This document shows positions 31,049 through 64,000 of a DNA stretch of 64,000 bases, in pieces; position 1 is the first letter of the stretch; each line of letters opens with the position of its first letter. The notes beneath the pieces were generated by a model, which was given only the letters and a program-made list of their open reading frames with translations, ran no database searches and was not told the DNA's origin. Source of the stretch: Octopus bimaculoides (Eukaryota); NCBI RefSeq assembly GCF_001194135.2, contig NC_068982.1:37083127-37147126 (forward strand). The letters are read 5' to 3'. The translations under genes were made by a program, and so were the position numbers.

Positions 31049-31759
31049 AATATATATANNNNNNNNNNNNNNNNNNNNNATATATATATATATATATATA
31101 TATATAAAGAGAGAGAGAAACATACACAATGTACATGCACAGAGTGATTTGTGTTCTGAAGTGTACTCTACTAGTGGTATGATTGGATGATATCTGTTGC
31201 ATGAAAAAAGTACCATTCAATAACAATACTGAAAAAGCTGGCAGTTATTTCATACTGTAGATCCATTCTGCCAATGCCAGGATGAAAAAATTATTAAAGT
31301 GATGTCAGTAACTGTCTCTTCTCCTCTCCATGAATATCTTAATGCATAAATCACATGAAAAATGTAATATCAATCAATGTGGTATAAATAAATCTATCTA
31401 GAGAGCTTACACTGTGTTCAACCTGCTAGAAGTAGCAACCAAATCTCATTAAATCTCACCCTACTGTCTTAAAAAGAGATATGGAAGAGCACATTGGGTA
31501 TGTAATCATACTGTACTTGTGAAAGAAAAAAAATTATATGATGACAGATGGAGTGCCTTTAATCATAAATCTACTCAATCACATCAGATCTGAGGTTAAG
31601 CAACAACAATGAAAATATAATTATTCATATCCTTCAAACGTCTGAGTGAAAATTCAAGTTCATAGGTCTGCGCTCTGAGTTCAAGCAATACTGAGGTCAG
31701 TTTTACCTTTCATCTTTATGGTGTTTATAAAAAAAATTCCAGTCAAATACTGAGGTTGA

Positions 31760-31830: not shown

Positions 31831-32003
31831 NNNNNNNNNNNNNNNNNNNNNNNNNNNNNNNNNNNNNNNNNNNNNNNNNNNNNNNNNNNNNNNNNNNNNN
31901 NNNNNNNNNNNNNNNNNNNNNNNNNNNNNNNNNNNNNNNNNNNNNNNNNNNNNNNNNNNNNNNNNNNNNNNNNNNNNNNNNACACACACACACACACACA
32001 CAC
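31760..32003. repeat. (CT)n - assembly gap (N 31831-31981) - (AC)n
   Basis: Seen directly; a further small gap (N 31059-31079) lies in a (TA)n tract. Confidence 0.95.
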
Positions 32004-38169: not shown

Positions 38170-38375
38170 ACCGTGTGACTGGTCCTCGTGCTGGTGGCAC
38201 ATAAAAGCACCCACTACACTCTCGGAGTGGTTGGCGTTAGGAAGGGCATCCAGCTGTAGAAACTCTGCCAGATCAGATTGGAGCCTGGTGCAGCCTTCTG
38301 GCTTGCCAGTCCTCAGTCAAATCATCCAACCCATGCTAGCATGGAAAGCGGACATTAAACGATGATGATGATGAT
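38170..38375 (+). mobile_element. SINE/RTE-tail copy
   Basis: ggtggcacataaaagcacccactacactctcggagtggttggcg...catggaaagcggacattaaac(gat)n. Confidence 0.8.
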
Positions 38376-39629: not shown

Positions 39630-39960
39630 GACCAAAAATCATCATCATCATTGTTTAACATCCGCTTTCCATGCTGGCATAAATTGGACGGTTTGCCTGA
39701 GAACTGGCAAGCCAGGAGGCTGCACCAGGCTCCAATCTGATTTGGCAAGGTTTCTACAACTGGATATGCCCTTCCTAACACCAATCACTCCAAGAATGTA
39801 GTGGGTGCTTTTACATGCCACTGGCATGGGAGCCAGTCAGGCAGCACTGGCATTGGCCACACTCAAATGGTGCTTTTTATGTGCCACTGGCACGGATGCC
39901 AGTCAGGTAGCACTGGCATCAGTCACACTCAAATGGTGCTTTTTACGTGCCACTGGAAAT
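39630..39960 (-). mobile_element. SINE/RTE-tail copy with tandem internal units
   Basis: (ATC)n tail, conserved tail sequence, then repeated gtgctttt(t)a.gtgccactggc units. Confidence 0.75.
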
Positions 39961-44093: not shown

Positions 44094-44517
44094 TCTCTCT
44101 ACTGTTGTCAGCTGCTAGAAGTTGTAAAAACATGAGTCTATGTAAGATGGTGAATGATGAAGAAAGTTCTGAAGGTGTGTTGTTCAGCTGTTTGTGTGCA
44201 GTATCAGGTATCTGGATGGTGGCAGGAAGAGTTTAGTAACAGTTGCAGTTTTCTTTGAAGGAGGGCCCACTCAAAAAGAAAGAGAGAGAGAGAGTGGTGC
44301 TGGCACACTACTAGCTTTCGTTGAAGTTTGGGGAAAGTTGGGTAATACAGTTGGTGGGTGGGGGTTAGCTTGCTACTTATGTCATTATCAGCTTTCTACT
44401 ATATACTTCTCCAACCAAAGATCTACCTCTGTCTGCAATAGTCATGTGTAGCTGTCAACATGGCGTTGTGTTTTACCTGCTGTAAGATATGTCCAACCAT
44501 CTAAACAGATGGTACGT
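44055..44517 (+). promoter_or_regulatory. Candidate internal promoter / 5' UTR region
   Basis: (CT)n tract 44055-44100, CAGCTG E-boxes near 44110 and 44185, no recognisable transposon, and two donor-like sites (CT|GTAAGA at 44482, TG|GTACGT at 44512), each preceded by a short ATG ORF. Confidence 0.3.
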
Positions 44518-45469
44518 TATGGAAATTATTATGGATTATGGAGTAATTGTCCATTTCAATAGCCTTGCTGCATCTCATCATCCTTGTCTGCTATTATACA
44601 CAATGAAAATGCTTATTTTAAACAGTTTCTTAAAAATAATGTGAATGTATGACAGCAACTCAAAAGTATTTCTAAGTTTTGCTTGTCCACTGTTTATATT
44701 ATTGTCATCACTTTGTACATTTCTTGCTAAAGCTTTGCTTTCTATTTGAAGAAAAACATTCACCTTAAAACAGTACATTGTGCTATCATCAGTGACACTT
44801 TTGATCTGCTAAAGTTTTTTTTAAAAATATAAACCAAACTTTTTCTCATGGATCTACTGTATGTCATTTCAGCACAAGCACAAAGTTTATTCATCTAATG
44901 AAGATAACTAAGAGAGTCAAGAATTCCTTTGGATATATACATGCTTTGAGAAATCTATTCTTTCGTATATCACCTGTCATCATTTAACTCTAAGAACTTT
45001 CGGGATCTTTTTCAAAGAGGATAATTCTTTGAAAATATTTTCGTCACTTAAAAAGTTATCTTCTCGCTGCATTTAAAATGGAACATCATTCTGATTGCTT
45101 TAATTGTAGAAAACCTTCCATTTTAATTAAGATTTACTCAATTTGTTTTTGTTTTTGAATAGCCAGTTACTATTGTCAGACAGTATCTTTGGTTCAGCGT
45201 CCATATGTTATTGAGGTTACCTTTTTTACTTGTTGCTACAGTCCAGTGATTTTTTCTGTTTCGAAAGAAGAATTTGACCATACAATATGTTTTCCACAAG
45301 ATGCTGCTGTATTTTCTTTGCACATTTGAATGGAACCAGCAAACTCTGTTGGATTAACTTTCCACAACCATCATACCAACTTCCTTACTCAACAAGTTTG
45401 AAAACTTAAAACTTTTGGATGTTCCCAATTATTGAAACTTCTGCAGCAGTGTTAGTGTTCCTCTCTGTC

Positions 45470-45580
45470 ATGGCTGATGATTTGGTGACACTGGTGGCAG
45501 CCCTCACTGTCCTCATATCCCTAGCCATCCTCTGCTTCATTGCTGCAGCACTTGTTTTTGGCATGTGGCTACTGAAAAAC
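45470..45580 (+). CDS. Candidate alternative first coding exon encoding a transmembrane signal-anchor (MADDLVTLVAALTVLISLAILCFIAAALVFGMWLLKN); upstream in-frame ATG at 45419
   Basis: gtcATGG start context; 111 nt (37 codons); donor AAC|GTAAAT at 45581 in phase 0, matching the phase-0 acceptor at 62323. The segment is GC-elevated, drops sharply to AT-rich sequence after the donor, and has no recognisable transposon similarity. Confidence 0.55.
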
Positions 45581-46859
45581 GTAAATAATTCTTCACTATC
45601 ATTTCTTTTAAAATATTTCATAAGTTTAATTGCTATTCTCTAAAGGAAAGAGCATAAATTGTATTAATTTTTTTTTTTTAACTAAATTTAAAAGAGTTTT
45701 ATATTTACTTATAATTATCAAATAGCTAATGTTTAATGGTCATTATAATTTACTTCTTACAGAATATATAATTTCTTAAAGCAAAAGATTGGAATTCTCC
45801 TGTTACTGTAACAATTAGTTTTGAATTTCTAAAATCAAAATATTAAGCTTTTATGATTACTTTAATTGTTTTGTTTCCCTAACTAAATTTACTACTTAAT
45901 TTTAACTTGATTCAGATATTATTAAAATATATATTTCCTGTTTCTTTCTTATTGAAATTATCTATTTTCAAAAGTAACATTCTAATTTCCAATATTTTCT
46001 CAAATTTTTACATTTTTCATAACTTTGTTTATTCTTCTGATTTCACCAAACTTCATCAAGAAAACAATAGGAAAATGTTTTGAAATGGTGAAATGCATTT
46101 GTTTTATTTAGTTTTTAAATATTAAATTATTTTGTTAAATGGGAAATTATGAATCTACTTCCTTTCTTTGATATTGTAGCTATTACATTGTTAATAATGC
46201 AAGCTGAAAGTTAATTTTAAGAGTAATATTCCTAGAAATAAATTTATTTCTATATACAAACAGAGATTTTCTTTCATCTGTTGTCTCATTTATTATATGA
46301 ACACACATAAAACACATACATACACACTTATTACCTAAATATACAATTATAGATGTGTGTTATAAATATGTGTTTGAACATATATTACTGTAAAATAATA
46401 TTCATTGTCTGTTTCTCTTCCAAATCCTACCTGTTATACAAAGTTGTTAAATTGTCATTAAAATTTAAATGCTTAAATCAGAACTATTTATCTCTGTTTT
46501 TACCATTTGTTATCTTAAGATATAAATTAAGTGCTAAAAACAATATTCTAAAGTATTGATATAAGGAATGAGTTAGAATGGTGAGTGTGTGTATGTGCAC
46601 ATGCATGTGTGTGTTTATATAATGTTGTAAACACACATATAAAGTATACCCAGCCTACTCAGCTAGTATTGTTAATTAATATGGTGTATTCTTTGTCATA
46701 GGGTTATACATACAATATATTCAGATGATCCAAATAGAATTAATAATTTTACTTTCAGATTATATCATCATATTGTTTTCCTTCATGTAGATAAAAACAA
46801 CTTGTCAGTGGATCATCAGTTGAAGTTACAATAAATTTTCCCTTTCTTTATTAGTGATA

Positions 46860-47170
46860 TCCCATGTAGGTGCCACATAAAAAAGCATCCATGCTGGTAC
46901 CACATAAGCACCTGTACTTTTTACAAGGCACCACATAAAAAGCATCCATGCTGGCACCATGTAAAAAGCTCCCATGCTGGTGCCTCATGAAAAGCACCTA
47001 GTACACTCTGTAGAGTGGTTGGCATTAGGAAGGGTATCTCACCATAGAAATCATGCCAAAACAGACGAGTGGAGCCTGGTGCAGCTCTCCAGTCCAGCCT
47101 GCCAACTCCTGTCAAACCATCTGACCTGTGTGAACATGGAAAAGAGACATTAGATAATGGTGATGATAAT
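46860..47170 (+). mobile_element. SINE/RTE-tail copy with several short internal repeats
   Basis: Repeated ggtgccacataaaaaagcatccatgct units followed by the family tail. Confidence 0.7.
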
Positions 47171-47329
47171 ACAAACAATTCAGAATACACACCAAGAGCT
47201 GACTTTATCATTCATCCTACTAGACTCAATAAAACATTTAAAATAATGAGAATGAGTTTATTGCATACAGTGCTCAGAAAACAGCAGTAAGCCAAGTAAA
47301 GAAAAAGAGCAATTACATCCAAAAGTGCA

Positions 47330-47530
47330 TGCATTAGCATGCAGGATATTAAAGCGTAAAGTAAAGGGAACAGTAAAAGAGCTATATAAAGGTTCACAGG
47401 CACATCAGGAGTAGTGTTGGCAAATTTTGGAAAGCACGGAACTTTTAAGGAATGCAGTGTCCTGACAGTTAAGTAATGAGGGTTGTTCCATGCTTTGATA
47501 GTTCTGTAATTATGAGCATGAAAAACTTCA
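47330..47530 (-). mobile_element. L2/CR1-type LINE 3' end remnant
   Basis: aggaatgcagtgtcctgacagttaag...gttccatgctttgatagttct is the antisense of the F..RT...WN.L terminal motif. Confidence 0.4.
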
Positions 47531-48435
47531 CAATATATTGTTGTTGTTTACCTTTTACATTACAATCAGAATCTTACAGTGAAATCATGATACATACAAG
47601 TCACTCTTAATTTCTTTGCAGCTTTCCAGTTAGTTAACTTTGATTCGTAATATTTATGCTATGTATGCTGAAAGTGTTTTCTCCTTTACAATAACATTTG
47701 GTCGCTGCTTATTTCATCGGCATGATCCATATAATGTTTATTGTTTGTAGGGTATAAATTGTATGTTTTTTAGCATAAATGATGAGCCTGAACATATGCT
47801 TGCACAAACATGAATACAAAATGCACATTTCAAAATGTTTAATATTTTCAATGTTTTTTTCTTTTTTCACGTTTGTTCAACTGAAACTCCATTTTGTTGA
47901 AGCAAATGAAATTTGTTCTCATGAACACTTAGAATATTTTGATCCCTCAGTCAGCTTCAACATTATATAAATTCTTCATTATTGGTTGTTTCTGTTATTT
48001 CTGTTCATCGTTTTCCTTGGGCCTGTATACTCAGAGATGAAACTTGAAATTAAATTTTCAAAATTTGTTTCACTTTCATCACTTTTACTAGGTGGGTCAT
48101 TTCATCTTCTATATTTGTGCATCATGATTTTACATGTATTTTTTTTTCTATTTTTGCATGGCTTATTTAAAATCAGTGATATATTTTTCATCTGTCAAAC
48201 AGCGTAAATTAAGACATTTTCTGTTGTTACCAGTAGAATGTATGTAGAAAGGAAATAGTAGGTCTCAAAAAAATGCTAAAGGTTGATAATTAAAATTAGT
48301 GATCAACCAGAAGAAATGAAAGCTAGGACTGGCTTTCTAAAGTGAAAATTATTACCACCAATTTCAGACAGAAAAGAGAAACAGGGTTACTGACAGTCTT
48401 TAAATCATGTATCTATAGCTTACTAGATGACCACA

Positions 48436-48803
48436 TTATTACCTCCACCTTAGCGAAGGCAGAGCTATTGTTTTCAGTCATGTTTGTTTGTTTGTCCGTG
48501 GACAAGATATCTCAAGAACCGCTGGATAGATTCAGATGAAACTTTCAGGGATGTTTGGCCTTGTGGCTGGCACGAACTGATTAGATTTTGGGATCAATCT
48601 GGTACTGGACAAGGATTCTGGATTATTTTTCCGTTTTTTTTTTTTTTTACTTAATTTTTGAGAGTGGTCAGGTTCAATTTTAGTATTCTCGTTTTTGAAT
48701 GCAGTCGAGTTTATTTCAGATATTCTCATTTTAAAAATCATCTCTGGCTAATTGTTGAGACGAATTTGGTGTTGCCTTGGCAGAGGTTTGTGCTCTCTGA
48801 GTG
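48436..48803 (+). mobile_element. Non-autonomous Helentron-associated (HINE/DINE-1-like) element
   Basis: 5' ttattacctccacc...gaaggc, (GTTT)n tract, gatgaaacttt core and 3' ggcagaggtttgtgctctctgagtg with sub-terminal inverted repeats; matches the recalled family layout. Confidence 0.55.
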
Positions 48804-49059
48804 ATGTAAATACTCTGTGGTGTAATTGGTTATGAGGTAACTTGGCAAGTACTGCTACATGGTTCAAACACCAATAGTGGGCCAGTTTTACTTTTCTTTC
48901 TCAAATGTATTCCTATTTTTTACATTAAACTCTAAATAGTTAATTTCAGGATTGACTCTAGAGTGTTGGGAAAGAAGAAAGGAGACAGTAGAAACAAGAC
49001 TTAAAGCGTTTTATCCAATGTTTACCCTTTCACTTATAAATTAGCTTTTATCATCATCG

Positions 49060-49210
49060 TCGTTGTCATTTAACATCTTTTTTTTCCATGCTGGCATGGG
49101 TTAGATGATTTAGCAGGGGCTGGCTTAGCAGAAGACTGCACCAGGTTTCACTGTCTGTTTTGGCAGAGTGTTTACAGCTGGATGCCCTTCCTAACAGCAA
49201 CCACCATACG
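49060..49210 (-). mobile_element. Degenerate SINE/RTE-tail copy
   Basis: ttccatgctggcatgggttagatg...gctggatgcccttcctaacagcaacc. Confidence 0.6.
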
Positions 49211-52000
49211 GTTTTAACTATATTAATATAGAAATAACTCTTTTGTTATCTCTTCAATGTTTTATTTAGATCAAGCTGAAACAATGTGTATCAAACAAAA
49301 ATTAATATTTTAATGTAGGACCCATCAGAAGCAGTTTAATGACTCTCGTGATCATTTAAGGAATTAAGTAATCAATAAACATGAAATCATGTTAATTATC
49401 TTAAATTTCTTATATAATTGAATTAATAATTGGCATGAAAATACTCTGACTTTTTAATAGTAATTAAAATGTTGCTAGTTTTTTGGGGTTTTTTTTACAT
49501 ATACACACACACACATGAACACTTTGTTGTTTTATCTTCTACTGTTGGAAATGCTATGAATGCACTACCTCAGGATTTCTTAGTGGTTAATTCCCTTCCG
49601 TCCTTGTCTCTAATTCATGCGGTCAGAATAAAAGTAATATTTTTGGTATGATATGTTGTTGATTATCATTACCACTATCATCGTCATCTTCATCATCATC
49701 ATCATCAAACAAAGCCCACCTGCTATCTATCATATGTTAAATATTTGGCAAAGAAACAAGATTGAAGCTATTACAGAAAATTATTCTGATTCGTCTTTAC
49801 CTCATATTTTGTATTTATATTGCCAGTAGTGAGTTGTGGTAGTTTGGTGGTACTTCATTATCACTCTATTGTTAAAAAGTTAAAATAGTTTTTCTTTATA
49901 ACAACCAGCATATTTAGAATCTTTCTTACATTTTATCAATCTGTTTCCATTTGGGTGCTGCTGTTCATTTGCAGTTATGAGGCTGTTAAGGGTTATGCCT
50001 TGCACTAACTGCTCACTTACAAAGCTCTCTGTCTACTCTTTACAAAGCTAATTATTTGTTGATGTGTCATCAGTATTAAGTTTGTTGTCGAGGAGGGTGG
50101 TATATGTGTGTTCTAATGTTGATTTTGTATTACTGTAATACGTCCTATTTAAGCAAAGCTTACAATGCTTACTTGTAAAACTTGTGTAGAATATATCTTT
50201 TTAACTCTCAAAATTATTTTTACCTATTATTTCTGTGTGTGTGTGTGTTTAAGAGCAAAATATAGGGAGGGACTATTGAAGAAAAAGATTTTCATTTCTA
50301 TAGTCTTGTATAATAGCATTCTGTAATATCAAAATACTGTCTTGAAGTTAAAAGTGAAAATAGCTGAATTGTGCTTAATGAGAAGATTGTTCGAAGTAGG
50401 AAAGGAATATTTCTTTTAGTAGACAAGGGCTACTCAGTACTGGAGTGTAGATAAGACATGATAAAAAAGAAACAATTAAAAACTTGTATATATTGAGCTA
50501 AATTGTAGTACACTCATCATTTGCGTAATTTGATTTGTTTCATATATTTTTTAAATAAAGAGTTAGGATCATTAATTTAAAAAATTATTTCAGCATAAAA
50601 GACTGGATATTGCTGTGAAAATATTAATTTAATGCAATTTGTATTTCATTGTATGATTTGATTGAAATCAAACAAACGAAAAAGAGTTATACTTTATAGC
50701 AATATAACAAAGAAAATTTGCATCTATAACTTATAGGTGGTATTACTAAATTAAACCCTTTTATGCTATGAATATGTGCAAATTCCATTTCCTTTATAGA
50801 TTAAGTTAAATGTTAATTTGTTTGACTTCATTTGTAAATTAGAGACCATTTAGAGACTAATAAACACAACCTCTTATGAATAAATTAACATTATTTTTAA
50901 TATTTTAAACTTGTGTTTTGTTATATAACTTTTAAAAAATGTATTTCAAGCAAATGTTTTGTTTGTATTGTTGGAATAAACAACCTTCTGTACATGAGCT
51001 TCCAAAACAAAATGATATGAAGAGCCCCATCTTGTTAAGTGAATCAATTGAAAGTAGCAGATGGAATAAAAGTATTTTGCACTACATGAAAAGCAACTGA
51101 TACTGTGTCAGTGAGGCAGAATCTCCACCCATAACAAATATCTCCTTTGAGATAGTTTCATGTATATATAAATTTCCTTCAGGTTAATAGTGGGTATTTA
51201 CACAGTGTATCATACACTACTTCATTCAAGATTTTCTTGATTTTAGATTGTTATTTTTTTGAAATAGACAATATGTCTTTGATATTTTTATGAACTGAGA
51301 GAGAAAATGGATCAGTTTAACTTTTATATAAAAATTTTAAATAGTTAATTATCCTAAACTAATTAGTTAAGAAATAGAAATTTATTGGGATCCAGCTTTC
51401 AGCCTGTGAAAGTTTGAAGCTATTCTATATATAAATTTTTTTTTTTTTTTCAATACTCTTGCTATCAAATTAAAAATTAACAATTTGATGTGTTTTATTT
51501 AAAAACAAGGAAGACTTTAGTTATATTACTTCACTGAAATAAATAAGTTAGCACATCAAAAACCTGAAAAATGTAAACAGCATAAAAACCCTCCTGTTTT
51601 CTGTGGTAATAAAAACGCAGAGTAAAAAGGCTTAATTGGGTTTGCAGCATAAATTCTTGTCACTCTTTTGTTTTAGAAACCCAAATCTAAACATGGAATG
51701 TTTAATCATGGTTGTGCAGTTTTTGAATGCATTTTTATCCAGTACTTATGTGAAGCTGTAAATACCAAATATATCTTAGACTTAGTTGTGGCTGCTAAGC
51801 AATGTGCCCCTTTACACATATTAGAATGCTGTTTTAGATTAACAGTTCTTCCAATATTCATAAATTCCATTTTTGATTTGGTTGAGTGATTGTAACTGAC
51901 ATTAAAATGCTTAATGTTATACAAAACAAACTGACATCAACATATTACAAATGAAAGTTTATATGGAAATTTGATCACACTTGTTAAAAGACAGTTATGA

Positions 52001-52190
52001 TTAGCAGGACATTGCTGGAGAAATAAGCAGGAAGTTATACATAAGCTACTATTATGGCAACCAATTAATGGGAGATATAGTAGAGGAAGACCTGCTTGCT
52101 TAAACATTCATCGATCAACTCTCAGGCAATACAGACCTCAGTAAGGAATAATTGCCATGAGCAGTGGAAAACCATGAATTGTGTAAAGTC
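52001..52190 (+). mobile_element. RTE-clade LINE C-terminal remnant
   Basis: LAGHCWRNKQEVIHKLLLWQPINGRYSRGRPA, then after a frameshift TFIDQLSGNTDL; typical of the RTE ORF C-terminus. Confidence 0.7.
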
Positions 52191-53333
52191 TTTATCAGTT
52201 CAACTGTGGTAGCAGTGATGAACTGTGACCTCTCTTTGCTGTTCTGTTAGTGCTTTGCTTCTTAAACAACAGTTACAAGAATGCCCTCTTGTTAATGAAT
52301 GATAGAATTCCATGCTATCATGTTTGTTGAAGCAGACTCCTTATCCAGTAAACATACTTCCATTTATGGATCATTAAAAGATAAATTTAATGCCTTTGAT
52401 GTAATGTCATATTGAAAGTAGAAGTTGTAAATAATTGAGTGACATTCCACTCCATATTTATTTTGTTTACAAGAATAACTCTTGATAAAGTGTAGTCACT
52501 AAATGACACTACTACATTAGAGGTATAGTCTCAGTCTCATTAAAATGTTTTAGAGATTAAACTTTCTTTTTGTTACATACGTGCTTCATTTGGTGTACAA
52601 ACCTCAAAAAAATCATATGATAATAATCTCAATGTTTGAAAATTTGTTTTGTGTTACTCAGAATTTGATATGGTAGAAAAAGGTATTTTTTAGGTAAAAA
52701 ATTTTATTTCCAGCAATATTGAGTTTCATTTTCTTTGGATCAATGACACTGCCACCTTCAGTAATGTGTAAAGAATTACTGGTTTTTGGTGCACTGTTAT
52801 GAAAGTGCACTTGAAAAAATATATTATTTGTCATGTGATGTTGGTATATGTTACAAGCATTTGGCAAGTGCATAGTCCTTCTGAACATTTCAAACTCTTA
52901 AATCATTATGTATTAGTAAATGCAGAAAAGTGATATTTGGCCCATGTTTCATCACCAACCTGATCATCATCATTATCACTACCACCACTACGTTCAGTGT
53001 TACATTTTAGCCTGTGAGACATAATTTGTGAATATTCATTCTTATGAGACTTCTTGGATATGGTTGATGTTTTGTTCAAGTAGTTGAGGTAGGCTTCCTA
53101 ATATATCCAAAAATTTGAGTATTCTACTCAAAATGCAATTATTCATGTCAGCATACTTTGATGAAACCTTCCCAATCAGCAGTTGTTATAGATCTTGAAA
53201 TAATTTCATTTTTAATAAAGATCTCTATAATAATTCCTAAATAATGAGGTCTAGTAGTGCCTGAATGATTAAAGATGTCTTAATGTCTAAGAGATTCCTC
53301 AAACTTCCTTAACATATCTAATTAATACTTGAA

Positions 53334-53395
<62 letters not shown>

Positions 53396-53428
53396 AGTTC
53401 TATATTTAAGAGATGAGGAATTATTTAC

Positions 53429-53486
53429 ATTATTTACATTATTTACATTTGTCGGATATCCGACAAATGTAAATAATGTAAATAAT
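53429..53486. repeat. 58-bp perfect palindrome between (AAT)n tracts
   Basis: Centred on gtcggaTAtccgac (53451-53464) with 29-bp arms of ttatttaca units; (AAT)n at 53334-53393 and 53481-53509. Confidence 0.9.
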
Positions 53487-54849
53487 AATAATAATAATAA
53501 TAATAATAAAGAAATGCTCAATACCTATTAAAATATACATAGAGAGCAGTGCAGTACAATTTGAATTGACGAGGATCTGAATCCTGTAGAACTGAAGTTC
53601 TGTTACTGTTAGATCCAATATAGCTTATCTCTCAACTCTTTTGAAGCATTTAACATGAATTTCTGGATTAGCTGTGATGCTTAGTATCTAGTTTTGCTTC
53701 TCATAAAGTAGAATAACTTTTTATTTAAAAAAATTTTTTTGCATTCTGTCTTAAGTCAAATATTTTCTGGATTATTCTATATCTGTCTGTATCACACTGA
53801 TTAATTCACTAAAGACATCTCATTTGTCAGAAATGTTATTATGGTGATATAGATTATAAAGTACATATAGAAATACTTATTTCTGGAACTTTTAGCCTCT
53901 CCTCAAATTGCCATTCTGTTTCTATCAGTACAAATTACCTATTTTTATGTATCTCATTCAGCCATTGTTCTGTCTTCTAAACTTGGTTCGAACACATATT
54001 TCATGAAACAAATTCAATTTGTTACTATTTTAATCCAGGCCAAAATCATATCGAGGTGGATAATTTTACTTTTCAGTTTCTTCCTCCTAAATCACTTCGA
54101 CAAGAATTATGCTGACTTTTCATACTCCTTATGCTTTCTTTGTAAAGGAAAAGCAATTAATAAACATTCTTGGTTTTCTCTATGTATTTTATGTCAATAA
54201 GACTAGAGTTGAAAATACTTTATGTAATTGAATGAAGAGAAAGTAAACCTAGTAAACAATCCCATAAAATCTCTATCTTGTCAAATATATTGCCTATCTA
54301 ATTTAGAATATATAGGTTATACATCACTTCAACCATTTTCCAATTGTCATATCTTCATCAGAAGGAAAAACATCAGTTTATTTATCAAAAGTTTTGTGAA
54401 GAATTGTTTTTAAATTTTAGATCAAGTAAGGGGGGGAAAAATAGACCAGTTAGATAATATTGAATTTTTGATTTGGACAAAAATATACAAATTAAGGCAA
54501 GTGACTTGACAGCTGTTAAAGCTTCAGGTAAAATGCCTTATATTATTTGCTCTTGCTTTCTGCAACATCCTATGGAGGTCAACTTCGCCTTTCATCCTTT
54601 GCATTCTGAGTTCAAATTCTGTCTTCTATCACTGACTTCTGCATGATGACCAACTGATGTTTTGGGACTGAACTAAAAATGATAGGTGTACAATAATGAT
54701 CAGAATGACATATTGATTAGAACAGTATCATTATCACATTAATTAGACAACAGACCCTGCAGAGCTGAAACATATTATACAAAAGATTTTATAACATTTA
54801 CAAACATATATAAACTCTTTCAACTTCGAAAATACCATGTTTTGAGATG

Positions 54850-54952
54850 CATATCATCATCATCATCATCGTTTAATGTCTGCTTTCCATGCTAGCATGG
54901 GTTGGACGATTTGACTGAGGACTGGTGAAACCAGATGGCTACACCAGGCTCA
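54850..54952 (-). mobile_element. 5'-truncated SINE/RTE-tail copy
   Basis: (CAT)n then gtttaatgtctgctttccatgctagcatgggttggacg; ends abruptly at ccaggctc. Confidence 0.75.
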
Positions 54953-56837
54953 AAAATCATTTTTATACAGTCCTATGATTATAATTCTTGATCAAAATCT
55001 TTTTAGCTTAGTTTTATTTTGTCAGTCATTTATCTATATACTACAGTATGTAAGATGGAGATGTTATAGATTTATGAGATTATAATGGTTATAAGTTCTA
55101 ATCCATAGACAATGGACTACTAAAATTAGAAGGTATAACAGTTTCTTAATCTGGTCATTTGTTGTATTACTTCAGGCTTGTTCTTTATTTAATGTCTCTA
55201 ATTTTTCAAATCATTTTAAAGCAATTGTCACAAGATAATAATTATTAAATCTAATTCTTATAAAACAAAAGGGAAAAACTTACCAAAGAAATTCTGCTTA
55301 GATATTTTATTTATTGTGGAATCGGGTTTTATATATAACATTTTCTTAATTTAAATTAATGTTTTTGAAACTAGGTTAAAATTTATTGTGGTTTATTCTA
55401 TTCCTTGCGGACACCTGCTAAATAGTATTGAATTTTTTTTACTTATATTAATTAGGATAGGCACTAAACTTTACAGAGTTATTTTTACCAACCTAAATTT
55501 TTATTTTATTTCACATAAATCATTAATATTGATTCTTAACATTATCACAAGTTCAGGAATTTAAGGGAAGTCACAGTCGATTAAATCAACCATCACTACA
55601 AAACAGATATTTATTTTAATCAATCTTTTAGAAAAATAAAAGATGCCCACCCACCCCCAATGAGATGTGAAGTCACAATGTAATGGGAAACTTTGTATTT
55701 CAAAATATTTTATCCAGTACTTTACAGCCATCCACCTGCTTTACATTAGCCTTTCGACCATCCCACTATCCTTACACTAAACAGTGACATTACTGTATTT
55801 GATGGCATGAAAGATGTACAGGCATTTTAGATACACCCTAATTTCAGCAGCTCATATTCAGGATAAAAGTTTTCAATGCATTAGAGCTTATGCAGTTTTG
55901 CATATAGGATTTAGGGCGATGTTTTTAAACTTGTTTTTTTTTTTTCTATGTTCATCTTACATGCTATCAAATACAATAATTTACTTTCATGTTTTCTCCA
56001 ATGCAATATATTCCTAACATTGTTTTCATAAATTAAACCTACAAAAGAGTTCAATTTGGAAAATCTCATAGTGTAGAAAGACCTGGTACAAAGAAGAACT
56101 AAACCTTTTGATTCAGTTACCTGTAATTTTGTCTTCATCACTGAAGATAGATACATTTATTACTCACGTAGAATCATGAATGTTGCATAAGGTAATTTGG
56201 AGAGAATTTTTCAAAGGTGTCTCTAACTAGCTTCACCTTAGCAGAAATTCGTATATAAGCCATTGCCTAGGAAAAGAAATATTTAATTTTTGTGTGTGTG
56301 TGTGTGTGTACGCATAAAATATACATGTACATGTATTTATATATTCTTCCCCTCTCTCCACTAAATATTTATTAAATATACATGTATATAAATATGTTAA
56401 TATAATCTTTCACTGAAGATTAGCAATAATTACTTGAAGAGTTTACTTTGCATGATTTAGAAACACTGATTAATTTAATATAATTTGATCCATTCAAGTT
56501 ATATAGTTTGCAATAGATGTAAAATTCCACCACATTTCACTTTCATTATGAAAAAACAAAGTTGCCTCGTTGATGTGAAATGTTAAAATGTGTGCATCAT
56601 CTAACAGATGTACATCGTCTAACAGAGTAAACTGAATGCCTTCAGTTTACTTGAAATGGAATCTGCCAAAGGCATGTTTCAATTATTAGGAAAGGCATTA
56701 AATGGATTTCTCCAGACATTTTAATTTGTTGCCAGAATTTCATACTTTTGAATTTTGTTTCTGTGTTTTTTGGTGATAATGGGTTTAGTCATGTTTTAAA
56801 GTTGCTTATGTATTATTTATGACAAGGATGACACAGC

Positions 56838-56870
56838 ATGTCTGGTACATTGAGAAGCAAGTCAGTAGTA
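56838..56870 (+). CDS. Weak candidate micro first exon (MSGTLRSKSVV), phase 0
   Basis: agcATG start, 33 nt, donor GTA|GTAAGA at 56871; frame-compatible with the exon at 62323. A match this short can arise by chance. Confidence 0.2.
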
Positions 56871-57121
56871 GTAAGACATTAGAAATATTGACCAAATTAA
56901 GAAGTGTTCTTCAGTATTTGAATAGATAACTGACAAAGCCTATCTTTTCATGTCTAAATGAAGTTAAATGTTCAAAGTGAGAAGCAGTTTTAAACTCTAG
57001 GTTTCTCAAACTAGAGAATGTAAACGATGGAAATGTACAGGCATATTTAACAAATTTCTTTTAATGAAGCTAGAATCAAAATGCTATAAGCTAGTGTTTC
57101 ATAAAGAGGCTTCTAATAAGT

Positions 57122-57126
<5 letters not shown>

Positions 57127-57182
<56 letters not shown>

Positions 57183-57202
57183 GTATATATATGTATGTAT
57201 AT
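57127..57202. repeat. (TA)n microsatellite
   Basis: Seen directly. Confidence 0.95.
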
Positions 57203-59759
57203 AGTAACAAATACAATACAGAATACTAAACTTCATATCTTACTGAGAAAGGGGTCGGTGCAATTACAAATGCTATCAAATTTACATAACCAATTTGATG
57301 TCTAAACAGGAGATACCTACACTGCTAAATTGTACATAATCCTCAAGGCTCACATTAATGTGAATAATTTATTTGGCATGTGTGTGTGTGTGTGTGCATG
57401 TGCCTAGCTGAAATAAGATCACATTTGTATTTTTCTAGTTTAATTATTTGAAGAGTGTTTATGTATTTATTTATTTATTTTATTTATTTCTTTTAGTCTT
57501 CATTTGTCAAACTTCTTATGCTTCATAATTTTGGAAATAAAACTGCCAGAATATGCTTCTTAGGAATAATTTGATATCTTTTTATACTTAATCTTTTTGA
57601 TTATTTGAAACCTTGTAATATTATTAACTTAAGAATCTTGAGTATCCAAAGAAATGACAAAATATTAAAATAAACAGGGTGAGAGTTTAATTACTATATT
57701 AATTCTACTCTATACTTCTACCAAATTATCTTCTCACTTGTTGACAGATTCAATTACCATTCAGTCACCTTCTGAACCAAACCATCCTTGGTCCTCCATT
57801 CCCAGTCAGATGTAACTGCACTCGTTACTCATTTTTCTGCTTCATTGATATCTATTTCTCATCCATAATTAGTTTAAACTACACATGAGTAATTTTGTTT
57901 AATATTTTATTTGTAGATTTTACCGCATGAGGAAATTTCAAAAAGTACAAAATAAGTTTCTTCGATTTGCAGCTACTAAGAAATTTTAATTTTCTGAAAT
58001 GTATCAATTCTAGCAAAATGGAAATCTGTCTATTGATTCTAAGCAAAAACCTTTGGATTGATTTTTGATATTTTTCTTTGGAAATTCCTTTTCTCATTGC
58101 TTTAATAAACCACTCATTGATATTAAATTCTTGTGAGATTACTTTCTTCTTTTTCTAAGTTTAATATAATTGTATTTCTGCAAACTGTTAATATTGCTAT
58201 ACACATAACAGACATTGGTAACTAAGCAATTTTATACTGAATTTTGATAACAAAAAGCTAGAGAAATATATTTATGTTCCCTTTAAGTTTCAGATAATGC
58301 AATAGATATTTCATTTACTAATATTATATGAATAAAAGTTTATCTTTCTGTTGATGTTGTTCTAATATGCACAAACTGCTCAAAGCATCTTAAACTTATT
58401 TCATTTGATATATTTCTATTGTGTGTGTATGAGTGCTTGTTTGTGTGTGAGTGCTTGTGTTTCAGTTAGTAATTTGAAATGAACTTGGAGCCTTTACTCG
58501 AAATGAAACTATATGCAAATTTGTAGTTTTTATTTTGAGATAATGAAAAACTATGATTATTGAAGGAAAATATTATCATATCAATTATATTTTACACCTC
58601 TGCGCCAAAAATACCTTGTAGCCTAATATATTCTGAGATATGGAAGTATGGTTCACTTTTATTATATAATTCTTTTTAATAACTATTAATATTGCTGGAG
58701 TGAAGCAACCATGCAATTTTTGAAATCACATTCCATGCATTCACACATTGGACTGTACTTCTTCAATGTCCTTGACTGCATGTGTTCTTTTTCCAGTGTC
58801 TATTGGTAACAGCTGTCAAGTCTTCCAGAAAGTTTTAATGCCATATGGCCATTAGTTTTCTCCATTTTATTCTTTTTGTGGTGGTGCCTATACTCCATTT
58901 ATCTAGCTGCAGTTGGATGCGACCAATTAGGCATGATCTTTAACATGTCATGAAGTCTTCACAACAATGCTCTTCTCAAGACATCTTCACTGTGAAAAGA
59001 TTGAGGTTCAGAATTCTTAAGGTTTTCCTCAAGAACATTTGGTGAAAAATAACCAACTATTTTTCCTGATTTCTACAATTTTCTTCCATTTTATGCTTGC
59101 ATGTAGTACTATTCATAGTACAGTAATATTGCAGAAGGAAATTTTGAATGTTGGTATCCATATAGCATAAATATATAATTTTTATTGCCAAAAACTATAT
59201 AGTAATCCAATTAAATTTATTGATTTGATTAGAGTATATCTATATTTTAATAAATAAATAGCAGAATTATATAATTGTGATTACATTTTTACCTATGGTA
59301 ATGAACATGTTAAAAAAAAAAGATCATATTCAATAAATCACAATTAGCTGTTCTGGTTTTATTCATAATTACTTCCTTTGAATAAGAATGACTTCTATTT
59401 ATTTACTAAAATTGCCTGTTCCTTTCACTTATATAATGACACTTTACTTTAACTATATAAGCCGTGTAATAGTTAGTTTGTAAAATAGCCTCGTATGGGA
59501 ACACAATTTAATTTTGTATTTTATAATTCATTAAGAATTCAATATGATAAAAAATGAATATTCTTAAAGATCAATTTTTAAAAATTCCCAGGCATTCTTC
59601 TAGATATATAATTTTTATTTTTTTCATCTGAATAAGAGTGCTTCTGCTTAATTTGTTTCTTCCTGAGCCCACTCATCACTAATTTGGGTTCACCTGTCAT
59701 TTAGAATTACCATCATTTAGCATCTTTTTTCCATGCTAGCATGTAACACAGACACTTGA

Positions 59760-60303
59760 CCCTTCAGCATTTAAACCAGTTATATCCAGCCCAAAGATTC
59801 TATCTGTTTTATGTTCAAACTGACCAGATCTAGCCTCTCACACCTACTCTACAATGTTATTCTAAAAATAAACAGTCACATCGTTGAAATTTCAAAGCTA
59901 TAAGCTCATACTTGATTAATTCAAGATACCTGTGCCCGTGACATGTGTAAGGATTTTCGAACGAGATCGTTGCCAGTGCCCCTGGACTGGCTCTTGTGCG
60001 GGTGGCACATAAAATAAACCATTTTGAGAGTGGCCGTTGCCAGTACCGCCTGACTGGCCTTCGTGCGGGTGACACGTAAAAGCACCCACTACACTCTCTG
60101 AGTGGTTGGCATTAGGAAGGGCATCCAGCTGTAGAAACTCTGCCAAATCAGATTGGAGCCTGGTGTAGCCATCTGGTTCACCAGTCCTCAGTCAAATCGT
60201 CCAACCCATGCTAGCATGGAAAGTGGACGTTAAATGATGATGATGATGATGAATGTGAATAAATAAGCACTGCATTTGACAGAGAAATCTGAATGCTAAA
60301 GGG
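59760..60303. mobile_element. piggyBac-like MITE interrupted by a SINE
   Basis: Ends CCCTTCAGCATT and AATGCTAAAGGG are inverted repeats with 1 mismatch; flanks TTGA/TTGG resemble decayed TTAA; SINE inserted at ~59927-60251. Confidence 0.6.
59927..60251 (+). mobile_element. Young SINE/RTE-tail retroposon with internal ~60-bp repeat units (octopus OK-like family)
   Basis: Ends ...ccaacccatgctagcatggaaagtggacgttaaa(tga)n; CpG-rich and near-identical to the copies at 38170, 62777 and 63674. Confidence 0.8.
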
Positions 60304-60989
60304 TTGGCATTGGCAGTGGATTTTATATATAAAGATTTAATAGTATGTATTTTTGCACAGAAGTAAGAGGGTAAATGGTAAAATACATCCATCCAAGAAG
60401 GTAAATAACAGAGAGTCACTGAAGTAAAAGCTTTCTATTTGACTATAAAACATTCTTAGTTGTGTAGTCCCAGCCTGGGTTATGTAGATCTATGATAAAA
60501 ACCTTTGACTATGACCATCCCATCTGTTTTGTATGTCAGGAATGGCGATCTCTTATGCATCATTTTTTTTTTTAATTTTAAGGTGGTGGGGTACAATCTG
60601 ATTGAGCTTTGGCTGCTATTTCTAGCAGATTGATCCACTACATTGTCTTCTTTAGTTGTTATAGTTTCTAGGTTGCACAGGAGGCATAGTAGTCATGATC
60701 ATTATATCTTCCTGTACGTCATGGAGTCTAATAATATTATCATTGTCTAATATATTAAGGGCACCATTGTACAAAGTTTTTTGTTTCATTTTGATGGACC
60801 ATGTAGAAGCTCTTTGTGTATGTGCATCAACATATATGTGTGTGTACATTATATGTATACACATACATCAGGCTTCTTCAGAGTTTCCATCTTTCAAAAT
60901 TTACTCTTAAGTTATTAGTCAACCTGAGACTATAGTAAAAGACACAAAGAGACCTAATCCAAAATCACATGAACTTCTGCACATCTAGG

Positions 60990-61325
60990 CCCTTATGTGT
61001 GTGTGTGTATCTTTTATCTTTTACTTGTTTCAGGTCATTAGCCTGTGGCCCTTGCGAAAATTGTTCTATCAGTTTCTTTTGCTGAACTGCTAAGTTACAA
61101 GTACATAAGCACATCAGCACTGGTTATCAAGCAGTAGTGCACACACACACACACACACACACCCATATATATATACAGGCTTCTGGCAGTTTCCATCTAC
61201 TAAATCCACTCACAATGCTTTGGTTGACCCAAAACTATAGTAGAAGACACTTGCCCAAAGTGCCACACAGTAGGACTGAACCTGGAATCACCGAGTGGGG
61301 AAGCAAACTTTTTACCACACAGCGT
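60990..61325 (-). mobile_element. Degenerate composite SINE
   Basis: Same layout and orientation as 26632-27008. Confidence 0.7.
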
Positions 61326-62322
61326 GTGTGTGCATTTCCAACCACTTTTACACATGTAATTCATAGAAAGGAGAAATATCTGTTAAACCCCAACAACTAA
61401 ATCAAATATTAATATTTCTAGCAAAAATAATTATGAAATTAAGCTGCTATTAAGGAACTCTGAATAAAGTTATTTTAGTTTTATTTATAGAAATACATAT
61501 ACATTTATATAAATATAGACTACATCTGAAACACTTGTAAAAACATTTAAGATTTTTTGATTTGAAACCATACACATATACACTTAGTGCCTCAAGAAAA
61601 TTCAAAACCCAAATATATTAATTTGAAACTTTAGCATCCAGTATATGCCAGAATATATTTTTAGCATATCATCATCATAATTTTTATATCTGATTTCTCC
61701 ATGCTGGTGAGAGTTGGACAAGACTTCTTAAGACCCTAGTCAATGGTCAGATGCTTTTTCTAATGTCAGCCCTTACTTGTTTTCAAATAAGAAACTTTAT
61801 TTTACTAGACTTCACATGTTTAAACCACCAAGTTCTGAAATATCGTTTATACAGAACATAAATGAATGTCAGAGCTGTCTAAGCAGTGCTAGTGTAAAGA
61901 TATGGAGACAAGTCTTTCATGCTCTCTCTCTCTCCCTCTTTCTTTCTCTTCCCACCCCCATGTTTACAATGGGTTTCTATAAAGTTTCCTTCCAACAAAT
62001 TTCACCCACAAAGTATGGATCAACTTGAGGCCATAGTAGGATATACTTGCCTAAGGAGGTATCACATAATGGAATTGAACCCCAAAACACATAGTTACTA
62101 AGTGAACTTTTTAATCACTCAGTTATGCTTGCTCCTATAATAATGACTACATCTTTGATTAAAAATTATTTGTCATGTCTTTCTGTTATTGTATGTTCAA
62201 GTACCTTCTTTTGAATTCTTTGAAAAAATTCCTCTTATTAACATTGTAATTAAGGCTTTAATCTTTTGATTATTGACTACATACCTCTCTTAAACTTACA
62301 AGTGTATTTTTTATTATTTTAG

Positions 62323-62736
62323 GCAGTTGAAGAGGAACTAAAAAGAAGACAGAGGGATGTGGATAGCTTAAACAGAAGTGGAGAAGAACTAAAAGGTAAA
62401 GAAGCTTTAGAAATCGTGGAACCTGAACTCCTAAAACTCAACAGACGATGGCAGGATCTTCGCTCCCAGAGCTTACAATGCAGACATGCTCTGGACTCAG
62501 GCACTACAGCTACAGTTGCTGCTGTTGCTTCGGAGAAAGCTATTACAAAAACTACACTAACTGCTGTCTCAAGCCACCTTTCCAAAAGCATTCTTAACTC
62601 AAAAACTTCTTCTCAGTATACAAATGAATTGAAGGAGATTCTTCGGAGTATTTCAGCTGTTCAACAACAGTTAAGTTCACAGGAGCTGACAGGAAGAGAC
62701 TTTGAAGATTTTTCGAAGCAAGAAGACAAGTTAAAG
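62323..62736 (+). CDS. DMD: Dystrophin internal coding exon (end of spectrin repeat ~15, linker, start of repeat ~16; equivalent to human DMD exons 41+42)
   Basis: Acceptor tttttattattttAG at 62321-62322 and donor AAG|GTAAAT at 62737; 414 nt, open, phase 0-0. Translation: AVEEELKRRQRDVDSLNRSGEELKGKEALEIVEPELLKLNRRWQDLRSQ...LRSISAVQQQLSSQELTGRDFEDFSKQEDKLK. This resembles human dystrophin as recalled (EIDRELQKKKEELNAVRRQAEGL...VEPTQIQLSKRWREIES and LNAPDLCAKDFEDLFKQEESLK). No database search run. Confidence 0.9.
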
Positions 62737-62774
62737 GTAAATACTATTTTTGTAATTATCAATAGTTTAAATGG

Positions 62775-62776
<2 letters not shown>

Positions 62777-62813
<37 letters not shown>

Positions 62814-62990
62814 GTTTAACGTCCGCTTTCCATGCTAGCATGGGTTGGACGATTTGACTGAGGACTGGTGAACCAGATGGCTACACCAGGCTCCAATCTG
62901 ATTTGGTAGAGTTTCTACAGCTGGATGCCCTTCCAAACGCCAACCACTCCGAGAGTGTAGTGGGTGCTTTTATGTTCCACCGGCACGCAG
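62777..62990 (-). mobile_element. Young SINE/RTE-tail copy immediately downstream of the dystrophin exon
   Basis: (ATC)n tail, then gtttaacgtccgctttccatgctagcatgggttgg...; about 6 mismatches in ~165 bp against 60080-60245. Confidence 0.85.
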
Positions 62991-63673: not shown

Positions 63674-64000
63674 ATCATCATCATCGTTTAACGTCCGCTT
63701 TCCATGCTAGCATGTGTTGGACGATTTGACTGAGGACTGGTGAAACCGGATGGCAACACCAGGCTCCAGTCTGATTTGGCAGAGTTTCTACAGCTGGATG
63801 CCCTTCCTAACGCCAACCACTCAGAGAGTGTAGTGGGTGCTTTTACGTGTCACCCGCACGAAAACGGCCACGCTCGAAATGGTGTCTTTTATGTGCCACC
63901 CGCACAAGCCAGTCCAGGGGCACTGGCAACGATCTCGCTCGAAAATCCTACAGGAGCCAGTCAGGCGGTACTGGCAACGGCCACGCTCAAAATGGTGCAT
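63674..64000 (-). mobile_element. Young SINE/RTE-tail copy with internal repeats, runs off the window end
   Basis: Reverse-complement match to 59945-60245, including the gttgccagt..gactggc repeat units. Confidence 0.85.

Follow-up and report, generated by a model that had tools for sequence, protein, structure and literature searches.

By the pattern of its substitutions, a short block in a large intron of the octopus dystrophin gene is a protein-coding 5' exon, selected on the + strand and not derived from a repeat, which encodes a strong candidate transmembrane (TM) helix and ends at a phase-0 splice donor. Judged from the sequence, chances are about even that this TM exon serves a membrane-anchored short dystrophin as alternative first coding exon. 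The wider proposal that octopods make a dystrophin of ~200 kDa from an intronic promoter, with a TM signal-anchor first exon that would fix the rod from the R15/R16 linker onward, together with the dystroglycan-binding region, in the membrane independently of beta-dystroglycan, falls slightly short of an even chance. To our knowledge, dystrophin and all of its known isoforms are peripheral proteins, reaching the membrane via beta-dystroglycan and contacts between the rod and lipids. No dystrophin isoform with a membrane-spanning segment was found in the literature and, since none is known, the prior probability of a TM dystrophin is low. If the proposal is correct, the dystrophin/utrophin family would gain its first integral-membrane member, and the octopus protein would be a natural experiment in which the WW/EF/ZZ module and the two-fifths of the rod nearest the C-terminus are freed from dystroglycan-dependent attachment. 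Moreover, it would represent a new route to short dystrophins and an innovation specific to a lineage whose muscles and nervous systems are unusual.

Sequence of the candidate transmembrane exon

The window, i.e., the whole 64-kb stretch of Octopus bimaculoides DNA analysed here, was compared with one second cephalopod, represented by Logan contigs L001 to L006, of which L001 is a 4.3-kb orthologous contig. The TM exon comprises the following features:

45419–45469, + strand: possible N-terminal extension MFPIIETSAAVLVFLSV, opened by an in-frame upstream ATG at 45419 in a weak Kozak context (T at -3)
45470–45580, + strand: core coding part of the TM exon, made up of MADD, the hydrophobic helix (45482–45574) and KN
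45581–45587, + strand: phase-0 splice donor GTAAATA, 7/7 identical in L001

The + frame around these features is open from 45410 to 45640 and is preceded directly by an in-frame TAA (45407–45409), while the last coding base of the exon is 45580, next to the donor hexamer GTAAAT at 45581–45586. The initial annotation, made from the letters alone, had described MADD, 31 uncharged residues, KN and a phase-0 GTAAAT donor, all of which are present in the sequence. Its start at 45419 is indeed an in-frame ATG, but MADD begins at a second ATG, 45470, and the annotation was silent on there being two. The second ATG lies in a strong Kozak context (gtcATGg, with G at -3 and G at +4). The possible extension MFPIIETSAAVLVFLSV resembles a signal peptide, with a candidate cleavage site between VMA and DD. 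Alternatively, 45419–45469 may be untranslated leader (5'UTR) or, should the conserved AG at 45448–45449 serve as an acceptor, part of a 3' splice site.

The helix, LVTLVAALTVLISLAILCFIAAALVFGMWLL, spans 31 residues from which D, E, K, R, H, N, Q and P are all absent, and its mean Kyte-Doolittle value is 2.64. The best windows of 19–23 residues give summed insertion energies of approximately -4.1 to -4.8 kcal/mol on a biological hydrophobicity scale. This long uncharged stretch with a favourable computed insertion energy is a strong TM candidate on sequence grounds, as had been proposed. The N-out/C-in topology put forward together with it fits the flanking charges, since DD precedes the helix and basic residues follow it. 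The C-terminal side of this argument presumes the splice to 62323, given that K and then ..KRRQR, with a net charge of ~+1 over the next 15 residues once the acidic residues in between are counted, follow the helix only if that splice is real.

The GC content is 0.48–0.56 within 45450–45550, against 0.14–0.36 in the flanks and 0.32 in the whole window, in line with the GC-elevated block described initially. Neither blastn nor tblastn found a second copy of the block in the window, the TM peptide is without any match in Pfam, and proteins sharing words with it are nearly absent, six candidates being all that emerged from 5.8 billion protein clusters. These observations rule out an origin from a repeat or transposable element and uphold the earlier description of the block as transposon-free. 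Searches of the protein collection yielded a single relative of the TM exon, P0005, scans of JGI metagenomes gave no homologue, and the window's 74-aa ORF, looked up as an exact sequence, has no record. An alignment query came back empty, missing even P0005, which we ascribe to filtering of so uniformly hydrophobic a profile. Six-frame translation of the 64 kb produces only 6 runs of at least 25 residues lacking D/E/K/R/H/N/Q/P, and four of the five other such hydrophobic runs stem from simple-sequence or very AT-rich DNA. By contrast with the single-copy TM block, a SINE-like family is present elsewhere in the window in at least 12 copies.

Conservation and selection

Only two islands align between the window and L001, namely 45408–45587 (86% identity, with flanks that are not alignable) and a non-coding element ~1.2 kb upstream. 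Within the first island, the 23 substitutions in 54 codons are distributed over codon positions 1, 2 and 3 as 6, 0 and 17 (P about 8e-5). The ratio dN/dS is about 0.09 over the 54 codons and about 0.03 for MADD..KN, where 14 synonymous and 2 non-synonymous differences are found in 37 codons. In the extension 45419–45469, about 3 differences are synonymous and 4 non-synonymous, each of the latter conservative; its ATG at 45419 is kept in L001 and it is free of indels and stops in both species. At the protein level, identity to L001 is 91% and every replacement is I/V, S/T, F/L, V/I or L/V, the six changes at position 1 on the + strand being either synonymous Leu changes (2) or conservative (4). 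The conserved stretch starts at about 45408, beside the in-frame TAA, and similarity stops immediately 3' of GTAAATA, beyond which the read-through tails are unrelated. Thus, the codon-position bias of the substitutions, the low dN/dS and the similarity ending at a conserved donor identify the block as a coding exon under selection.

On the same periodicity, a chance ORF as well as conservation of a non-coding kind was rejected. It is extremely improbable that the ORF is fortuitous and the block serves instead as a conserved non-coding element (an lncRNA exon or enhancer) or as a dystrophin cassette exon that breaks the frame. A clearly non-coding conserved element does lie close by in the intron (44103–44268) and the conserved AG at 45448–45449 could act as an acceptor; however, 17 of the 23 substitutions fall at position 3 and none at position 2, with no indels. 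Moreover, a cassette starting at 45450 would meet TGT TAG immediately in the dystrophin frame, its 131 nt would shift that frame, and selection on the TM frame would be left unexplained. An in-frame dystrophin cassette exon was rejected on the same grounds, since the only conserved acceptor would give a length of 131 nt and the dystrophin frame would reach TGT TAG straight away.

Selection on the opposite strand was also weighed and appears highly improbable. The block would then be a minus-strand coding exon with an acceptor, TATTTACGTTTTTCAG, ending at 45572, an ORF ..SSHMPKTSAAAMKQRMARDMRTVRAATSVTKSSAMTERNTNTAAEVSIIGNIQKF and a stop at 45408–45406, and the + strand TM ORF would be its shadow. 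The antisense frame, whose wobble positions coincide with those of the + frame, is open in the window and in L001 and looks constrained (13 synonymous and 9 non-synonymous differences, dN/dS about 0.15). In addition, CTGAAAAAYGTAAATA, read in reverse complement, makes a good-looking acceptor that is conserved, and the window's antisense stop falls at the boundary of the conserved stretch. Nevertheless, the six non-wobble changes all fall at antisense position 2 and none at position 1, which is the opposite of a coding pattern, and some of the replacements in the antisense frame are radical (T/M, R/S, E/V, I/T). Neither the C-terminus nor the stop of this frame is shared by the two species (GNIQKF versus GNIQSFWRIQQWDTSG before the stop), an open frame is expected opposite a run of codons without Tyr, His and Gln, and Pfam returned nothing for this frame.

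Conservation in other cephalopods, a check suggested in the initial annotation, held for one further species, in which the donor is kept and selection is evident. In a more distant cephalopod, the TM exon was not found within the 10 kb searched upstream of the orthologous dystrophin exon.

Upstream of the TM exon lie the second conserved island and several smaller patches of the same element:

44103–44268, strand not applicable: conserved non-coding element, 75% over 169 nt in comparison with L001
44399–44464, strand not applicable: further conserved patches of the upstream element, seen in global alignment with L001

The element carries two CAGCTG E-boxes, at 44109 and 44185, a fully conserved block of 24 nt (44171–44194) and GTATCAGGTATCT at 44201–44213. 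In all 4.3 kb of L001, CAGCTG occurs just twice, and both occurrences are orthologous to those at 44109 and 44185. The patches include the TATA-like CTATATAC (44399–44406), ACCAAAGATCTACCTCTGTCTG (44414–44435) and TGTCAACATGGC (44453–44464). The E-boxes and the TATA-like motif are situated 1.0–1.3 kb upstream of the TM exon, and no conserved acceptor was seen 5' of ATG 45419 in the comparison with L001. On this evidence, 44103–44268 is a candidate promoter, enhancer or non-coding exon, and for the patches at 44399–44464 we infer a possible core-promoter role. A coding exon was rejected for the element because of indels and an in-frame stop in L001 and the lack of wobble changes in the 24-nt block. 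A miRNA or structured RNA was likewise rejected, since the element folds worse than shuffled sequence on both strands (z +1.2 and +1.8) and has no match in Rfam. The conserved E-box element, adjacent to the TM exon, represents a candidate cephalopod cis-regulatory module.

The downstream dystrophin exon and the predicted junction

The exon to which the TM exon would be joined lies near the end of the window:

62303–62322, + strand: acceptor of the dystrophin exon, with pyrimidine tract tgtattttttattattttag
62323–62736, + strand: dystrophin exon of 414 nt, 138 codons, phase 0 at both ends

Its donor, GTAAAT at 62737–62742, is a hexamer identical to that of the TM exon. The encoded sequence runs from the last part of a spectrin repeat through a linker rich in Thr, Ser and Ala into the beginning of the following repeat and, by its similarity to known proteins, is dystrophin from the mid-rod R15/R16 linker region. 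The Pfam Spectrin model matches exon residues 2–58 with its last half (E=1.2e-6), at a score of 29.4 bits that is marginally under the gathering cut-off of 29.9, as expected for a partial repeat. The exon profile matches P0044 (3652 aa) at residues 1893–2011 (E=8.5e-8) and also P0099 (3675 aa), both of which contain CH, spectrin, WW, EF-hand_2/3 and ZZ domains. In the octopus gene, the exons for the dystroglycan-binding WW, EF-hand and ZZ region fall outside the window, past its 3' end. In reverse tblastn of dystrophins against the window, this exon was the sole match, and no upstream dystrophin exon was detected in the window with eight dystrophin queries. The start of the exon, Q/AVEEE or Q/AFEDE across the exon boundary, recurs in genomic ORFs of many invertebrates. 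Pfam, profile and tblastn results thus agree with the initial identification of a phase-0 dystrophin exon as the only recognisable one in the window.

The TM exon is located 16.7 kb upstream of this R15/R16-linker exon, in an intron that extends back at least to the window start (about 62 kb). It has a start codon, the same strand, a location within a dystrophin intron and an in-phase donor, as an isoform with an internal promoter would. Joining 45580 to 62323 would give ...WLLKN/AVEEELKRRQR, phase 0 to phase 0, a match of phase that by itself has a 1-in-3 chance. Downstream of the TM exon, the dystrophin exon and one block at 48440–48619 are the only non-repeat GC-rich blocks, and no other convincing coding block was found in 45.6–62.3 kb with a GC/repeat screen that could miss a small exon. 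A junction-spanning protein was found neither in the protein collection, which contains no spliced cephalopod dystrophin, nor, as a junction DNA pattern, in JGI metagenomes, which likewise lack one, so that these negatives carry no weight.

According to the reading that we consider most likely, a promoter in the dystrophin intron would drive the TM exon, with the E-box element 1.2 kb upstream as part of its control region, and the phase-0 donor AAC/GTAAAT would be spliced to the acceptor at 62323, also phase 0. Judging from the match position in the 3,652-aa dystrophin, the short dystrophin produced would have roughly 1,800 residues, with the actin-binding domain and some 15 initial repeats missing. 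MADD, the helix and KN at its N-terminus would function as an uncleaved N-out/C-in signal anchor. Consequently, the remaining rod and the WW/EF/ZZ region would lie on the cytoplasmic side of a membrane, of whichever kind, attached to it with no need of dystroglycan.

A separate gene nested on the same strand, an alternative already raised in the initial annotation, is less likely but plausible. Its product would be a micropeptide-like or single-pass membrane protein whose coding sequence begins in the TM block and continues in one or more exons that escaped recognition. Such a gene would account for a real coding exon and donor that nothing yet links to 62323, and TM-only first exons are typical of membrane-protein genes. 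A TM-bearing dystrophin is not known. The composition of the exon points the same way: 45470–45580 has a GC content of 0.50 and a GC3 of 0.54 (0.73 in L001), unlike the GC3 of 0.32 in the dystrophin exon (P about 0.004), a contrast that could indicate a separate gene or merely a promoter-proximal first exon. The GC-rich non-repeat block at 48440–48619 might offer such a gene further sequence; however, this block is spread across two frames and, like several other ORFs of the window, has no match in Pfam, and a second convincing coding block is missing from 45.6–62.3 kb. A nested gene on the same strand also requires its own poly(A) site within the host intron, which is uncommon, and the phase-0 donor agrees with the dystrophin acceptor. 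A one-exon micropeptide is ruled out, as the in-frame stop after the helix is not conserved and the read-through tails differ between the species. If the nested gene were nonetheless real, the dystrophin locus would contain an unannotated small membrane protein under selection.

Comparison with known short dystrophins and membrane anchors

As far as we know, the unique N-termini of vertebrate short dystrophins are short and soluble, none of them with a membrane-spanning helix, and we know of no vertebrate promoter in the intron before the R15/R16-linker exon. Short dystrophins produced from intronic promoters comprise Dp260, Dp140, Dp116 and Dp71 in vertebrates and Dp186, Dp205 and Dp117 in Drosophila, the latter with unique N-terminal domains that are conserved among related species and followed by spectrin, WW, ZZ and coiled-coil regions (PMC2840664). 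The short dystrophin predicted in octopus resembles the vertebrate forms (PMC2840664) in its unique same-strand first exon, placed in a large intron and spliced to the next common exon, and in a product that would miss the actin-binding domain and begin part-way through the rod. Unlike in vertebrates, the octopus promoter and splice are predictions from the genomic letters. With Dp186, Dp205 and Dp117, it would share the design of an invertebrate short isoform with a unique N-terminus. However, no transmembrane segment is reported in the Drosophila N-terminal domains, and they have no sequence relationship with the octopus exon, which belongs to no Pfam family and has P0005 as its only relative in the protein collection.

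Outside the dystrophin family, nesprins (KASH proteins) carry an extended rod of spectrin repeats that one TM helix of their own anchors directly in a membrane. The nesprin helix is C-terminal, acts as a tail anchor in the outer nuclear membrane and leads into the KASH peptide, whereas in octopus the helix would be N-terminal, a KASH motif is absent and the rod is that of dystrophin. As regards insertion, the N-terminal signal anchors of microsomal cytochrome P450 enzymes (type III, N-out/C-in) combine a very short acidic or neutral N-terminus, a long hydrophobic helix and basic residues with a cytosolic bulk. The likeness to the octopus anchor, whose insertion is predicted, is an analogy of mechanism only and implies no homology.

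If the TM exon belonged to a separate gene, the model would be the muscle micropeptides sarcolamban, phospholamban and sarcolipin, with which it shares a small ORF, one TM helix and a muscle-related locus. The ORFs of these micropeptides stop just past the helix within one exon; the octopus helix instead precedes a conserved splice donor.

Sequence and conservation of the hydrophobic exon

The plus-strand frame is open at 45410-45640, directly preceded by an in-frame TAA (45407-45409), and it includes the following features:

45419, plus strand: upstream in-frame ATG in weak context (ttttggATGt), starting MFPIIETSAAVLVFLSV
45470, plus strand: second in-frame ATG in strong context (gtcATGg), starting MADD, followed by LVTLVAALTVLISLAILCFIAAALVFGMWLL and then KN
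45581, plus strand: GTAAAT donor, directly after the AAC codon ending at 45580

The initial annotation was accurate in its description of the ATG context, MADD, helix, KN, GTAAAT and raised GC content (0.48-0.56 across the block versus 0.14-0.36 on its flanks). The block was also said to be transposon-free, which agrees with its occurrence as a single copy in the window and with the lack of any Pfam match. Its start coordinate, 45419, is a real in-frame ATG, although this upstream ATG had been left without comment. Stop-free stretches of at least 45 codons number 415 in the window, so that openness by itself is weak evidence. Runs of at least 25 residues devoid of D, E, K, R, H, N, Q and P occur only six times in the six-frame translation of the window; four of the five others arise from simple-sequence or very AT-rich DNA, the run in the transmembrane (TM) exon averages 2.64 on the Kyte-Doolittle scale, at a GC content of 0.53.

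A protein search using the hypothetical junction peptide recovered P0005, an ORF on Logan contigs that represent genomic DNA of a different cephalopod. These six contigs (L001-L006, ~4.27 kb, ending in T-runs) are taken as one species because they are mutually 99.97-100% identical. By blastn, L001 and the window share only two islands, 45408-45587 (86%) and 44103-44268 (75%), the remainder being unalignable. Over 54 codons, the TM exon and L001 exhibit 23 differences and no indels, distributed as 6/0/17 over codon positions 1/2/3 (P = 8e-5 for at least 17 at one codon position). The differences from this one other cephalopod, which bear on selection on the peptide, are mostly synonymous, with Nei-Gojobori counts of 17 synonymous and 6 non-synonymous (dS 0.58, dN 0.05), and of 14 and 2 over the 37 codons from MADD to KN; at the protein level there are five replacements, I/V, S/T, F/L, V/I and L/V. 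Moreover, identity extends through GTAAATA and then ends, the read-through tails past the donor being unrelated (VNNSSLSF.. vs VNIYTWIF..). Judged by sequence comparison, this pattern is characteristic of a protein-coding exon whose end is a splice donor in use. The TM exon has a GC3 of 0.54 here (45470-45580) and of 0.73 in L001 (3791-3901), a strong GC-ending codon bias in genomes of ~30% GC.

In L007, from a cephalopod more distantly related, the exon was not found in the 10 kb preceding the orthologous dystrophin exon. Searching with a profile of the two 54-aa TM peptides gave nothing at E<=10 and missed even P0005, in which one of the queries occurs unchanged; this blank likely stems from a composition filter acting on so purely hydrophobic a profile, and the negative is unreliable.

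The block can also be read as a minus-strand exon, from a frame with which it has its wobble positions in common:

45406-45639, minus strand: antisense ORF

Neither species has a stop within this frame, a conserved acceptor-like TATTTACRTTTTTCAG borders it, and it looks constrained against L001 (13 synonymous and 9 non-synonymous changes, dN/dS ~0.15). However, an open antisense frame is expected anyway opposite codons avoiding Tyr, His and Gln, and the six non-wobble changes fall at plus position 1, equivalent to antisense position 2, with none at plus position 2, equivalent to antisense position 1, an order that is normal for plus-strand coding and the opposite of what an antisense coding frame would normally show. 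On the plus strand, two of these six are synonymous changes within Leu codons; among the antisense replacements are T/M, R/S, E/V and I/T, and the antisense C-terminus and stop differ between the two species. We consider a minus-strand exon very improbable, and the block is in all likelihood a selected, plus-strand, coding 5' exon. For a hydrophobic exon, the coding strand is not identifiable from the dN/dS test alone.

The conserved element upstream

The second L001 island precedes the TM exon by ~1.0-1.3 kb:

44103-44268, plus additional patches as far as 44464: conserved non-coding element
44201-44213: conserved patch, GTATCAGGTATCT
44399-44406: TATA-like motif, CTATATAC
44414-44435: conserved patch, ACCAAAGATCTACCTCTGTCTG

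The element is non-coding, given its indels relative to L001, an in-frame stop in L001, and a 24-nt stretch (44171-44194) left invariant at a level of divergence that alters ~40% of wobble sites. It contains two CAGCTG E-boxes, at 44109 and 44185 (76 nt apart), and the only two CAGCTG sites in all of L001 are the orthologous pair. The natural reading would be a candidate cephalopod promoter, enhancer or non-coding leader exon. A structured RNA was rejected, since folding was no better than that of shuffled sequence and no Rfam family matched. No conserved acceptor was found upstream of ATG 45419; with the conserved AG at 45448-45449 as a possible acceptor, ATG 45470 would become the first AUG.

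The dystrophin exon and its preceding intron

62323-62736, plus strand: dystrophin exon, 414 nt, phase 0 at both ends, donor again GTAAAT

The end of this exon, previously placed at 62738, is corrected to 62736. Its residues 1-58 match the last half of a spectrin repeat (Pfam, E=1.2e-6). A search of 1.84 billion representatives with a profile built from the exon and four cephalopod orthologues yielded 102 relatives, most of them the same single exon in genomic DNA of many invertebrates. Those invertebrate ORFs have common boundaries, starting with AVEEE or AFEDE directly after a Q and ending in a conserved motif (QEDKLK in many), followed by a V that is the donor GT read through. The long matches, P0044 (3652 aa, at 1893-2011) and P0099 (3675 aa), display the complete CH / spectrin / WW / EF-hand_2 / EF-hand_3 / ZZ architecture of dystrophin. 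Because of the spectrin match and these long matches, the exon is, on sequence grounds, mid-rod dystrophin; its annotation as a phase-0 dystrophin exon is borne out by Pfam, profile matches and phase. We take it to be equivalent to the human repeat 15 end, R15/R16 linker and repeat 16 start. The exon boundaries appear kept across many invertebrate genomes (proteins P0002, P0007, P0015, P0020 and P0038), and the Thr/Ser-rich linker joining its two spectrin portions is hypervariable in both sequence and length. A (CAT)12 microsatellite (62777-62812) begins 41 nt past the exon end and 35 nt past the donor hexamer, directly followed by a SINE-like repeat copy (62797-62990).

The window is AT-rich (GC 0.32) and consists mostly of intron and dispersed repeats. 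No other dystrophin exon was found in it by tblastn with eight dystrophin fragments and, thus, the intron before 62323 reaches back at least to the window start (~62 kb). The TM exon lies inside this intron, 16.7 kb from the acceptor of the dystrophin exon. The only non-repeat GC-rich block between the two exons is 48440-48619 (48327-48651 overall, GC ~0.44), where ORFs are split over two overlapping plus-strand frames (..KISQEPLDRFR and ..DETFRDVWPCGWHELIRFWDQSG..) and no Pfam match was obtained; it could be a decayed piece of a mobile element, an exon being less likely. The earlier view that the dystrophin exon is the only recognisable coding exon downstream agrees with this GC and repeat screen, which a small exon could have escaped, this frame-broken block being the sole other candidate.

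Most GC peaks of the intron are due to a SINE-like family (~200-360 bp, at least 12 copies in both orientations, 73-94% identity), for which ARAGORN found no tRNA-like head:

4316-4483, 9122-9197, 23293-23428, 38170-38375, 39638-39918, 46975-47170: SINE-like copies
49051-49204, 54854-54962, 59900-60260, 62797-62990, 63674-63996: further SINE-like copies

Assembly gaps (N runs) occur at 8169-8303 and 31831-31981, inside CT/GA dinucleotide repeats, and at 31059-31079, flanked by TA-rich simple sequence.

Readings of the exon and its putative product

The initial annotation proposed that an internal promoter yields a short dystrophin with its own membrane anchor. We see an even balance for and against the TM exon being an alternative first exon of such a dystrophin, through a putative splice from 45580 to 62323. 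This is favoured over a separate gene nested in the dystrophin intron, which is unlikely though worth serious weight, because the exon lies on the same strand as dystrophin, its phase matches that of 62323, no other convincing exon precedes 62323, and dystrophin genes are well known for intronic promoters with unique N-termini (PMC2840664). Against the dystrophin reading, GC3 is 0.54 (0.73 in L001) versus 0.32 in the dystrophin exon (P ~0.004), the TM exon is known from two species only, and no membrane-spanning dystrophin has been described in the literature. Of the original proposal, the plus-strand coding exon and the phase match stand, whereas the GC3 mismatch with the dystrophin exon counts against it. 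Other readings have only a very slight chance, and part of the probability was given to no reading. No protein spanning the junction was found in a 5.8-billion-cluster collection, and JGI scans were empty; both results are uninformative, as neither resource contains any spliced cephalopod dystrophin.

If true, the membrane-anchored reading would add an unprecedented integral-membrane N-terminus to an internal-promoter short dystrophin, itself a familiar type. An intronic promoter would drive the transcript, whose start codon would be either ATG 45470 or ATG 45419; in the latter case, signal peptidase might cut after VMA. During translation, the 31-residue helix would enter the membrane, leaving DD on the outer side and K...KRRQR on the inner side. 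The cytoplasm would retain the partial repeat 15, the linker, all repeats from 16 on and the WW/EF/ZZ region. By position in P0044, the predicted product would comprise ~1,760 dystrophin residues plus the anchor.
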